Counted from the whole stretch's first letter, positions 33,833-39,032 are shown. The stretch is DNA of 63,719 nt, filler included, from Choristocarpus tenellus KU-1152 (GCA_964200185.2; 11 parts of 11 records of this genome joined end to end with filler, not necessarily neighbours in it), one strand, 5' to 3'. Numbers and translations: made by a program. Notes: a model not told the origin generated them from the sequence alone.

Positions 33833-36800
33833 CTAAACCTCCCCATTAGCCTTCCTTTCTGCCAACCACACAGAGAACGTCCCTGTTTCCTCATCTACAT
33901 CATACATGCGCTTCCTGTACTCATCCGTACCCCCTGGAAATTCAGGAACGTGACATTTGCTATCTTCATAGATTGCCTGCCTCAGGCGTATTCCATAAAG
34001 AATTTTCCTTTGTTCTTCTTGAGAGAGAGAACAGGGTCCTCTATCCTCATCCTTTCCCCTCAGGTTCATTGTCTCTTCACCCCCTGAGCTTCCTTCCTTG
34101 GTTACAACCTCCTTACCAACGCCCTCCTCCCAGCCCCAGGCATGCACTGCTAGGTCCTCACAGTATGCCCACTGGAGACTCCCAAGGACATGGGTAGCCC
34201 GTCCCCCTGTAACTCCACGTGCCTGCAACCGCCCCAACTCCTCCTGAGACCACCGTTCCCGACCAGCCCTGTCTGGTAATTGTGCCGTCCCTGAAACCAC
34301 AGCTGCAAACAGCTGGGCTTGCATCTCAAAAAGGGGAAAAGGGACAACGCTGCCCAGAGTCCAGAATGGTAGGGGTGAGGCATGGTCAGGTGGGAGCGAC
34401 AATATATCACTAACAATAAGGTTAGGAGGTAGGAGGGGTAAATTAATCCGATTTTTTCGAATGTGACATTAAGGAAATAAAAAACGGGCAGTTTTGATGT
34501 CTTGAAATTCTGTGCTTCGCACCATGTTCCCTACCTTCAATCTTGACAAGATTCTGAGGTCAGTAGGTAGGGTGGGGTGGTTCCAATGTTTAGGGTGGGG
34601 GGGAGGGAAGGGCAGGATGAAGCCATCAGGTGGTTGTGGAGTAGAAGAGTGGTGGGGGTAGTGTGGGATGTATGTATATATATATACATACAGTATGGGA
34701 CAGCAGGGCAGGAAAGATAGATAATGAGTTGACGACATAATGTTTCACACAATTCAGCACTTGTGAGTCAGGAGTACGACTAGCAGTGGCCAAGGAATAA
34801 AAAAAATAGTTGGGTGTTGCATACATAGCCGTATCCTTTGCAACTCAAGGAACCATCAATCACATGCAAGGATCAAACTGGCACCTCCATCATGAAAAAT
34901 AGAACAGATTCCAGGGAGAAGCAGGCACATCTCATCTTTTGGGAAAAGTGGATTACCTTGATAAATGCTGACCAAATCCAATTCCACCCTTAGGAGGGGG
35001 TTCGTATCGACCAAACTAATTCTCAACCCCATAATACAAACATGCAAGTAGGATGTACTGGGGGGTAGGGAAGGGGTGGGGGAATAGTGTTCTTCGAGGG
35101 AAGAGGAAAGGAATATGATAGATGATCTCTGCTTGTGCCTTTTGAATGTATGAGCTGAGCAAGTGAACACTGGCATTCTTACCAGCTGTTTCATCCAGTT
35201 AAGAGGCATCAAGCTCTATCAAACAGAAAGTCTTGTAAATGACACTGAGGAAAATTATCCTCGAGCAATCTGGGTGCCCAGGAAACTCAATGGCAGGCAG
35301 ATGTGTGTGTGTGTGTGTGTGTGTGTGTACAAACATATTTTCTCCCAATATTCTATTAAATAAACACAATTTCATCAAGCCGAATTTTAGATCTCCATAA
35401 GCTCACAAACTGTGTATTTTTTAAATGTCTTCTCTGTTGCTCTTCACACTCAACAGCCCAGAAAGCAATTTCATAATTAGAAAAAAAAACAAGCACGAGA
35501 AAAAGGCACATAGCTGTCACCACATTTATTATTTATTGGGCTGATGATGAAACTACTTGATCCACGAACTTATGCTACTGCAACGCAAATGTAACCCTCT
35601 GGAACTGCTTCAAATATATATTCACCTCTGTGGGAGCCCTATGAAGCCCAGGCTAGGATGTCTTGTATGAAATATCTGCTTGTAGAGTGGACTAACACAT
35701 TCTGAAACCGGGTTGTCCATCAGTCCAGACCCTTCCAGGAAGGGAAAACTGTAGTCATACCCTGTGCACCAAATAACTGTATCCACCTTTGTCGACAAAC
35801 CGAGCACATGATGTTGCACAGTCATTCATCATGTTATGTCTGTGTTTGTGTCTGCTCACATAGAGGACACAATGAAGTGGAACATGATAGTGTGTGACCT
35901 CCTCTCCAAGCTAATCTGAAGTATCACGGATAGATCTGCTTCTGCAACCCACGTTCTCCCCTCCCCAATACTTTCTCATCCAAGAAAATCAAAGTTATGT
36001 AATGGATTAGAGTTGCTATCTGTTGGTTATAGGTAATAGCACTCACCTCAGCAAAAGTGCCATCCTCAAACTTCACACCATGACTTCCCTCAAAAGCCTT
36101 CAATGCTGGTCGCCACCACACGTTTCCATGTCCACCACCACCCCCAACACTTTTCTGTGCATTCCTATCGCACACATGTACCATTGAAGCTGGTAGCAGA
36201 AATTTGAGAGACATTGGATGGAGCCTACAACAATCATTAGGAAGAGGATTTGGGGCATTCTCATATAATAGCCGATTAATATATCAGCAAACTTTTCTAT
36301 ATCTTGCTGCCTTGAGCAGTCACTCCAGAAGTCCCAATCCTTACCCCTAGAGTCAAACGGATTAAAGATGATATCCCCTCGTTTTGGGTCATAGTATTTT
36401 GCTATCATCTCCCCAGTATTGTCTATGACAATAGCAGGCTCACCTCGCCTCTCTATTTGAGGCAGCATATTATGCATTAAGTTGGTTTTACCAGAACCTG
36501 TAGGTAATTCTATGCCCATGCTTGCTCTTGATTGCTAGGAAACGCGTGAGAAGGGCGGGCCAGAATTCCTGCAGAAAACAAAAGAAAAAAAGCGCACCCA
36601 TCATTCCATTTCCTGGGCCTTCCTGCATCTCAGCACGCTCGCCAGAGAACTGGAAGTACGAGAGTGCACCTAAATCGGCTTCGACTTGCATAGGATATAG
36701 AATGAGAAACCAGTATGACACACGGGGGAGGTCGCACCTGTTGAAGATATCTCACGAGCCAAGTCCGTACCGCTGGAACGTGACCCAACGCACAAGACCC

Positions 36801-37488
36801 TTTCGTTGCGGAAAGGCTCAGGATTGTCGTAGTCTTTTGAGTGCATGACACGACCTTGAAAACTATCCAAGCCATCAACTGTCGGGTACGTAGGCTCATC
36901 GAAATGACCATTGCAGATAGCAACTGCGTCGAAGGACTCTACGACAGCTCCATTGGCACCATCCTGGTAGGTCACGTCCCAGCCGACCTCCAACTCCCCA
37001 AAGGCTGCATTGTTACCTTGCACGGAGGGCCGGACTGACAAGACTGGGCAAGACAACTTAATATCTGGCCACAAGTCATAGACTTCTGCATAATCCCGCA
37101 GGTAATCAAGCACTTGTGCATGAGTTGGGTAGGAGCTGATTTCTGGCGGAAAAGGATGTCCAAAGAATGCCATACACTCCTTTGGCAAGTTTGTCACTAG
37201 CGAGCTATACATAGGCGCGTCAGGTCTGTAGCGCCACACGCCACCAATGTCAGAGTCCTTTTCTAGCAATGTAACACGCAATCCTTTCCGTCTCAAGAGT
37301 CTACACGTCACTAGTCCCGCACCCCCTGCCCCAATGACAGCAACATTGGGTGCATGGTGCTCTAGTGGTGACTTCACTAGGTCTACCCCAACTGTTCCCA
37401 AACTACGAGACACCACTGCCTTCCCCATTGATGACAATAAACTCCAGCGATTCACTCCTCCAGGTGATAGGGAAAGGGGATTGAGCAT
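33833..37488 (-). CDS. Flavin-containing monooxygenase (class B FMO); exons 37488-36738, 36189-36047, 35786-35626, 34349-33833
   Basis: Motifs: FAD-binding VAVIGAGGAG, GGVWRY, MYSSLVTNLPKE, FMO fingerprint FQGRVMHSKDY, NADPH motif VGSRSSG, VIWCTGY, GFIGLP and PFPLFEMQA. All three introns are GT-AG and phase-compatible. The start ATG could be 37488 or the next Met. Confidence 0.93.
36270..36501 (-). pseudogene. traD: Fragment of bacterial conjugative type IV coupling protein gene (TraD/TrwB family) inside FMO intron 1
   Basis: TGSGKTNLMHNMLPQIERRGEPAIVIDNTGEMIAKYYDPKRGDIIFNPFDSRGKDWDFWSDC: Walker A followed by the I.D..G..YY...DII.NP.D.R...WD.W pattern of F-type TraD. Confidence 0.85.
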
Positions 37489-37632
37489 GTTTAGATGGGT
37501 ATACAACAGTACAGGTGTAACTCCATAAAACCTACACTTACAAATTGGATAATCAATCGTAGACGGACGGATGGCGAAAACAATAATTTGAGACATCCAG
37601 AAGTCTCTTCAGTCCTATTACTTCCTATATTC
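37489..37632. promoter_or_regulatory. Putative bidirectional promoter/5' UTRs
   Basis: Only 144 bp separate the divergent ATGs of FMO (37488) and NDUFAF6 (37633). Confidence 0.55.
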
Positions 37633-39032
37633 ATGAGACCACAGTCGATACCACGGTCTACCATCGGTCGTGCGCTGAGTTCAAGGAGCGGAGCAGCGCC
37701 CAGTCCAACAGAGCACTGCGCGAAACTGGTTCGCCAAGGCGATTATGATGGCTATATCTTCAGTTATCTTGATAAGGTTCCCCAACGAAGGTGCTCTATT
37801 TTGCATGTTGAGACCACGTCCATATGCAGCGTTTGGAAATTTAATCATCGAAAAATGTGGTCCATTGTACTTCTTGCGTACTTGAGACTTCCTGTGCCCG
37901 AAGAGCTTAAGTGCCCGCACAATACACTATAGTCGCAGGTGGCAAGATGACCGTCCATGGTATATGTGTACTGACTCCTCTGTCAAATCTGACCTATCAA
38001 CTCCCTTGAGCCATCTAGATCGGCGGCACTGGCGGTGAGGGCCTTCAACATCGAGACAGCTTCAGTGAGGGACGCTGTGAGGGGCAATGCAATGGCGGGG
38101 GAGCTCAGAATGCAGTGGTGGAAGGATTCGTTGGCGGCTATATTTGATGGTAACCCCCCACCTCAACCCATCGCGATTGCCTTATCACAAGCAGTGGAGC
38201 GCCACAAGTTGACAAAACGCTGGTTCGATCGTTTATTGGACGCAAGAATTGCCGACCTGCATAACCCGCAGTTGTCGTCCATCAAGGCCATGGAAACGTG
38301 AGTGCATCTTCAGTTGGGGAGAAGGATTGAATCCGCAGCACGCTTGTTCACCTCCTTACATTTAATCTATCATCTCACCAACTGTTGACCTTTCTGCAGC
38401 AAGCGTGCCAACCAAACTTTAGTGGGTTCAGATTGCTGCAAAGACTAATCGACATGCTTACGTGTAAGACAACGACCTGATGCATTCACACCACACCTCT
38501 ACAACCCCTTCCATACCCCACACTCGCTCTTGCACCCCAAAGCTACGCAGAAAACACTGCATCCTCCCTGCTGTACTTGATGCTCGAGATTGCAGGCGTG
38601 AAGGGCAAGGATTTAGACCACGCGGCTGCGCACGTGGGCAAGGCTGTTGGCATAGTGACCCTCCTGAGAGGGGCGCCGCACCAACTTGGCCAGGAGCACT
38701 CAGTGATTCCGTCTGAAGTCCTCTGGAAGCACCGCTTGTATTCCTCTGTGTTGCGGAAAGGCCCTAAGACGCCAGAGGAGGCGCACGGCATCGCAGAGTG
38801 CTTTTATGACGTGAGTGCAGTGAGCAAGGGCCACCTGGATGCTGCACAAGAGGTGGTTCAGGGTTTATCCGCTGATGCTTTTCATGCTCTCTTACCTGGA
38901 GTGCGGGCTGCATGGTATCTGGAAAAGCTTGAGGCCTGCCGATTTGACGCATTCGATGAAAGGCTCCAACCACATAGCCCACTTGGGTTTCACCTGCGTC
39001 TAGCAAAGTCCATTTTTACCCAAAAATTTTAA
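37633..39032 (+). CDS. NDUFAF6: Mitochondrial complex I assembly factor 6 (squalene/phytoene synthase fold); exons 37633-37790, 38019-38297, 38543-39032
   Basis: HCAKLVRQGDYDGY..AVRAFNIETASVRD..LRMQWWKDSL..WFDRLLDAR..YAENTASSLLYLMLE..DHAAAHVGKAVGIVTLLRG. The N-terminus is R/S-rich and presequence-like. Introns are GT-AG and phase-compatible. Confidence 0.92.

Follow-up and report, generated by a model that had tools for sequence, protein, structure and literature searches.

A short rickettsial traD fragment within an intron of an expressed FMO gene of the brown-alga lineage

We describe a short piece of a bacterial conjugation gene in the first intron of an algal nuclear FMO gene. It is best explained, at a probability of roughly 0.85 for the explanation as a whole, as ~235-246 bp of a Rickettsiaceae traD (the gene of a type IV coupling protein, from an F-type cluster) pasted into an intron that was already ancient. 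The most likely route would be end-joining repair of a chromosome break with stray DNA from an intracellular bacterium, and we infer that this donor lived, or still lives, inside the alga. Once in place, the piece would be transcribed passively in the FMO pre-mRNA. It would then either be spliced out with intron 1, which yields the productive mRNA, or stay in when splicing uses another 3' site, upstream of it.

The window, i.e., the whole stretch of 63,719 nucleotides, had previously been read from its sequence alone. That sequence-only reading placed a TraD fragment at 36270-36501, starting abruptly inside a Walker A motif, in an intron (36190-36737) with eukaryotic FMO exons on both sides; it took the fragment for a genuine and recent insertion, proposed a likeness to the TraD of Rickettsiales, and named as checks the two junctions, the orthologous FMO intron, and a phylogeny of the donor. 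Here, the stretch was found in three public sequencing runs (X1 and X2, which are DNA, and X3); a single study produced all three, and the assembly may itself derive from X1. The host gene and the insert comprise the following features, with the evidence for each in brackets.

36738..37428, minus strand: FMO exon 1, with a provisional 5' limit, from the FAD-binding GAGGAG motif to ..REISST (PF00743, E 1.9e-39; 59% to the Discosporangium FMO; X3 contig over 36738-37700)
36190..36737, minus strand: FMO intron 1, 548 nt, GT..AG, phase 1 (RNA-like joint 36189/36738 in X3)
36258..36503, minus strand: traD-derived insert (Pfam and NCBIfam matches; 88.9% nucleotide identity over 36270-36503 to L003, the traD locus of Rickettsiaceae bacterium AH-545-L11)
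36044..36189, minus strand: FMO exon 2, A-SMVHVCDRNAQ...FEDGTFAE (joints 36189/36738 and 35783/36044; tblastn to the Discosporangium and Ectocarpus fasciculatus loci, L043 and L044; frame check)
35626..35783, minus strand: FMO exon 3, VDTVIWCTGYDYSFPFLE...GLPQR (PF00743, E 6e-6; joint at 35783 and a loose X3 end at 35626; tblastn to orthologues)

FMO-like open reading frames thus flank the insert, with the two PF00743 matches and the tblastn alignments given above, and the eukaryotic exons and the intron limits proposed earlier both hold, the latter to the base. The best matches for exon 1 are an FMO from Discosporangium mesarthrocarpum (59%) and one from Ectocarpus fasciculatus (57%), which are themselves 51% identical to each other, and these identities make the host either a brown alga or a close neighbour of that group. 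The canonical join of exons 1 and 2 reads ..REISST-A-SMVHVCDR.. and matches Discosporangium REISSTARVVHVCDR. Discosporangium (~130 nt) and Ectocarpus (~360 nt) both have a phase-1 intron after ..REISST, just as the window does, and comparison of the orthologous introns, one of the checks named earlier, revealed no TraD similarity in that of Discosporangium (L043) or of E. fasciculatus (L044). Because the position and phase of intron 1 are common to both relatives and both are without TraD, the intron is old and the insert came later. Minus its insert, intron 1 of the window would measure ~300 nt, which is within the range of the orthologous introns. Orthology of the locus is further supported by micro-synteny kept with Discosporangium, where an SQS_PSY-family (NDUFAF6-like) gene stands head-to-head with FMO (L043 4246-5512) as it does in the window (ORF 38577-39032, plus strand). 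Within the 19.4-kb piece of the window that carries the gene, the intron sequence flanking the insert has no repeat copies elsewhere, and an Rfam search of 35500-37700 returned no RNA family, hence no intronic snoRNA or similar.

The traD-derived stretch itself occupies 36258 or 36270 to 36503 on the minus strand (77-81 codons without a stop, ~235-246 bp) and is contained in a minus-strand ORF, 36100-36519, of 139 open codons. Residues 7-84 of this ORF match positions 24-100 of the 387 in the Pfam profile PF10412, TrwB_AAD_bind (E 7.1e-25; 88 bits, against a cut-off of 20.5 bits), and the peptide also matches positions 184-259 of the 566 in NCBIfam TIGR02759, TraD_Ftype (E 6.8e-24), where its 84.5 bits, over that part of the profile, fall short of the equivalog cut-off of 521 for a whole TraD protein. 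With bacterial TraDs as its top relatives, the fragment is what the sequence-only reading took it to be. At the DNA level, homology runs without gaps from 36503 to 36270 with L003, and to 36258 with two other TraD loci (L046 and L001), so the coordinates first given are right to within a few bases. The abrupt start inside Walker A is likewise plain in the alignment, where the relative reads GSIGSGKT and the window ..TGSGKT, with unrelated window sequence preceding it. At the other end, 77 well-conserved codons (36501-36271) are followed by ~4 poorly conserved ones: in the last four codons (36258-36269), five of 12 bases are unlike all relatives, all of them non-synonymous (GYYMR vs. GFNSR). 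This diverged end may be damage associated with the junction, or the insert may really end at 36270, and the exact 3' junction is uncertain to that extent.

The insert thus amounts to ~14% of a TraD, comprising part of Walker A and the strands that follow. The L003 TraD has Walker A in full, together with Walker B, an N-terminal membrane anchor, and a TraG-D_C domain; in the comparison of the 19.4-kb piece with tra loci, homology ends after ~80 codons, and Walker B, the membrane anchor, and the C-terminal TraG-D_C domain are absent. Compared by blastn and tblastx with ~120 tra loci, the 19.4-kb piece showed no tra or other bacterial segment outside the insert. The GC content of the fragment, at 41.8%, is nearly that of its bacterial homologue (40.1%) and lower than that of the host piece (45.0%).

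A bacterial sequence this short could in principle have been misjoined into an algal contig from a contaminant Rickettsiaceae read or contig, and rickettsial DNA besides the insert is indeed present in the libraries, since a second TraD-like contig, nearer to L003, occurs in the same DNA samples. We nevertheless give such an artefact of assembly almost no credence. First, independently built contigs of the two DNA samples, spanning 35500-37700 in X1 and 35753-37505 in X2, each hold the piece with both of its algal flanks and cross both junctions at uniform depth. Second, both contigs carry a C>T change at 36040 (intron 2) relative to the window that X3 is without, so at least two haplotypes or strains are represented, all with the insert. 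Third, an X3 contig extends without a break over 36163-36567, reaching from exon 2 across all of the traD piece, and a GT..AG splice connects it to exon 1 (36737-36767). The piece is, moreover, only ~240 bp long with eukaryotic sequence on either side, and it is 11% divergent from the bacterial-like sequence present in the same samples. Bridged to exons in X1, X2, and X3, the piece belongs to the FMO gene both as DNA and as transcript, which makes a chimera very unlikely; the earlier claim of a genuine insertion is borne out by these contigs across both junctions.

That X3 represents RNA is taken from the data rather than from its record, namely from its GT..AG joints and from the contrast in depth between exons (~112-135) and introns (0-17). 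The joints number three, all on the minus strand: 36189/36738 (intron 1), 35783/36044 (intron 2), and 36567/36737. Intron 2 (35784-36043) is covered unspliced by an X3 contig at a depth of 17, and the part of intron 1 at 36610-36683 has a depth of 0; these intron depths suggest some retention of intron 2 and argue against DNA carry-over.

For the donor, a tblastn search of plasmids placed pRiCimp001, of the Rickettsia (Tisiphia) endosymbiont of Culicoides, at the top (75%), followed by four Megaira plasmids (71%); the Megaira plasmids matched include those from Mesostigma and Cryptomonas hosts. A scan of species-representative genomes then gave a closer relative, the single-cell genome of Rickettsiaceae bacterium AH-545-L11 (L003), at 92% in amino acids and 88.9% in nucleotides over 234 ungapped bases (36270-36503). 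Its traD encodes a full TraD of 698 aa in a TraH / TraG_N / SLT / TraD / PDDEXK_2 / relaxase-Toprim cluster, which has the composition of a typical rickettsial F-type conjugation module. A metagenome contig (L045) carries nearly the same sequence as L003, a further locus (L046) stands at 88% in amino acids, and nothing above 92% was found among the best 120 full-length relatives of the L003 TraD. A maximum-likelihood tree built on only 78 aligned columns makes the fragment the sister of L003 and L045 (support 97/72) and places it with these, L046, and the Megaira and Tisiphia plasmid TraDs in a clade of nine rows (99/96). The likeness to Rickettsiales that had been suggested, and the phylogeny proposed to identify the donor, thus converge on the Rickettsiaceae, in the clade of Megaira- and Tisiphia-type plasmid TraDs; since tra modules move between rickettsial genomes, the placement extends to no genus. 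The donor would be a relative of the marine lineage that AH-545-L11 represents. Members of the L003 TraD cluster in Logan and ENA carried no host information, no viral contig encoding a close relative of the insert was found in IMG/VR, and our search found no literature on AH-545-L11 or JAOMYS.

The survey also yielded two observations on the relatives themselves. TraD contigs from metagenome-assembled genomes (MAGs) labelled Sphingobacteriaceae, Flavobacteriaceae, Marinoscillum, and Albibeggiatoa (L005, L008, L016, L021, L022, and L023) fall among the Rickettsiaceae TraDs, at 65-73% to the fragment, and are probably mis-binned rickettsial plasmid contigs, if they do not reflect a wider spread of the tra module. 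Separately, one Rickettsiaceae MAG (CBDBTV01) holds at least five divergent TraD copies (L006, L017, L018, L024, and L030), which are 62-73% identical to the fragment.

The second TraD-like contig, present in both DNA samples, is 787 nt long in X1 and 561 nt long in X2. Its match to the window is confined to 36453-36503, with 3 mismatches in 51 nt, and three is also the exact number of positions in this overlap at which L003 and the window disagree. On the side upstream of Walker A, where homology is lost in the window, the contig opens with 29 bases that agree fully with L003 and L045 (29/29); past ..PQIE it continues into sequence unlike TraD and unlike any of the compared loci. This contig and the nuclear one have similar depths (19.2 vs. 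17.6 and 7.67 vs. 7.22). Judged by these matches, it is a distinct AH-545-L11-like traD fragment, which would represent a second insertion into the nucleus or else a broken gene from a bacterium in the cultures. Since a single rickettsial MAG (CBDBTV01) can hold at least five TraD copies, one donor could supply both TraD sequences.

These data bear on whether the piece may have arrived indirectly, by way of a host transposon, an insertion of a giant virus or phaeovirus, or a copy of an older and larger nuclear insert of rickettsial DNA. Such a history would suit the shortness of the piece, and the second contig, with its brief overlap, nuclear-like depth, and unrelated sequence beyond, suggests that several fragments are scattered in the genome. 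We nonetheless consider indirect arrival improbable, as the rest of the intron is unrepeated and no tra or bacterial segment lies nearby in the 19.4-kb piece, IMG/VR offered no viral vehicle among its contigs, and the two TraD sequences differ from each other in the overlap and upstream of it, and are thus not simple copies. Direct capture of stray bacterial DNA at a repaired break would remain the most likely route.

The age of the insertion can be judged from the kind of differences that separate it from its relatives. Relative to L003, the insert shows 20 synonymous and 6 non-synonymous differences (dS 0.67, dN 0.033, dN/dS 0.049), a ratio in agreement with the 0.04-0.15 found among the bacterial TraDs themselves. 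Fourteen changes are unique to the window lineage, and these are distributed 2/1/11 over codon positions 1/2/3; 11 or more of the 14 at the third position would be expected with P ~7e-4 (binomial, against equal thirds). Because the divergence is so biased toward synonymous change, nearly all of it accumulated in a working bacterial gene, that of an unsampled AH-545-L11 relative, before insertion. Assigning the three changes at positions 1 and 2 wholly to the time after insertion would imply ~4-5 substitutions in 231 nt, i.e., ~2% decay at most, and a value of zero fits equally well. The insertion is therefore estimated to be young, with nuclear decay of at most ~2%. The recency claimed in the sequence-only reading thus stands on the pattern of substitution (dN/dS of 0.05 and the 2/1/11 distribution) and not on the reasoning originally given for it, which was that the fragment has no stops. 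Simulated neutral decay leaves all 77 codons open with a probability of 0.82 at 2%, 0.36 at 11%, and 0.13 at 25% decay; with no stop expected at P 0.36 even after 11% neutral decay, the open frame was dropped as the main argument for youth.

Though removed with intron 1 in the productive mRNA, the piece is also found in an alternative transcript, for which the X3 contig described above gives the following features.

36569..36570, minus strand: alternative 3' splice site (AG) following a long polypyrimidine tract (X3 joint 36567/36737, which skips 169 nt, GT..AG)
36190..36568, minus strand: exon-2 extension of the alternative isoform, 379 nt, with the whole traD piece inside (X3 contig contiguous over 36163-36567)
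36510..36512, minus strand: premature stop TAG of the alternative isoform (translation of the join; 20 codons past the joint and upstream of the traD piece)

Transcription reaches the alternative acceptor 65 nt before the insert, in intron sequence that is not bacterial. The alternative join, from exon 1 to 36568, reads ..REISST-GILARPSHAFPSNQEQAWA-stop in a frame that differs from that of TraD; with a stop upstream of the insert and a different frame, the traD codons are never read from the FMO start. This isoform is probably unproductive. Both ingredients of a poison-exon-like arrangement, an alternative form and a premature stop, were found in X3, the RNA status of which is taken from its joints and depths.

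The question is then whether the insert has acquired a role, either as a poison-exon-like tuner of FMO or as the source of a small protein starting at the ATG at 36519. The isoform that retains the piece has a contig depth near that of the canonical joint in X3 (48.8 vs. 39.5), although contig depth is a poor measure and gives no isoform proportions, and the frame is open over 139 codons, both of which would accord with such exaptation. However, the alternative acceptor and the premature stop are both upstream of the insert, and the traD sequence is unneeded for their effect; the open frame is accounted for by youth; the ATG at 36519 sits deep within the mRNA, after a long upstream ORF; and a 77-residue P-loop slice without Walker B cannot form an ATPase fold. 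We thus hold exaptation to be very improbable, and the insert is most likely a dead relic without a function of its own.

Transfers of endosymbiont DNA to host nuclei are well known in animals, where Wolbachia inserts are mostly dead and sometimes transcribed; Dunning Hotopp and colleagues are said to have reported in 2007 such Wolbachia-to-host nuclear transfers in arthropods and nematodes. The present case resembles these in that fragments of the genome of a Rickettsiales endosymbiont lie in host chromosomes, and differs from them in that the hosts there are animals and the Wolbachia reside in the germline, whereas here the donor, placed through the inserted DNA, belongs to the Rickettsiaceae. 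Among F-type TraDs of Rickettsiales (RAGE, pRiCimp001, and the Megaira plasmids), the fragment is 71-92% identical in amino acids to the part proximal to Walker A, yet unlike them it is not a gene and cannot work as a coupling ATPase.

To our knowledge, neither brown algae nor the lineages nearest to them have been recognised as hosts that regularly harbour Rickettsiales. The closest algal parallel is the green alga Volvox carteri, in which a ~9 kb nuclear insert with four rickettsial gene-like sequences, including 16S, was described in 2015 (PMC4324946). In both algae, non-functional Rickettsiaceae DNA lies in the nucleus as the footprint of a symbiont that is possibly gone (PMC4324946), but the Volvox insert holds chromosomal-type genes over ~9 kb, whereas in the present host, of the brown-alga lineage, ~240 bp of a conjugation gene sit in an intron whose gene is expressed, and are partly exonised. 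The only published hint of Rickettsiales in brown algae that we found is MegNdeciBESST, a Megaira-related MAG that came out of the genome project on Nemacystus decipiens, a brown alga (Davison et al. 2023, PMC10132079). It ties Megaira-group Rickettsiaceae to brown algae and so makes a rickettsial donor plausible here, with the difference that it is a bacterial genome binned from algal reads and the present case is a chromosomal insertion. Nuclear insertion of endosymbiont DNA is thus already known, and its occurrence in the brown-alga lineage is new among the reports found, as a limited literature search returned no report of rickettsial DNA in a nucleus of that lineage.

A more far-reaching reading would combine three propositions: that the alga carries, or very recently carried, intracellular Rickettsiaceae of the marine AH-545-L11 lineage; that conjugative-element DNA entered its nucleus more than once, the second TraD-like contig being another such entry; and that the insert, in lengthening intron 1, sends a sizeable fraction of FMO transcripts into a truncated isoform. 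We offer this combination tentatively and think it, as a whole, rather unlikely; if true, it would mean that a scrap of traD measurably affects the expression of a host gene.

Together, these results describe a single dead fragment of 240 bp, the biological weight of which is modest, and which is at the same time a clean and small instance of foreign DNA that came to lie in the intron of an expressed gene and then appeared in an alternative transcript. The insert adds a case from a stramenopile macroalgal lineage to the few known Rickettsiaceae-to-alga nuclear transfers (e.g., Volvox) and names a concrete marine donor lineage to search for. Finally, a young traD scrap in a nuclear intron would be a lasting and contamination-proof sign that a bacterium has had access to the germ line in this lineage.
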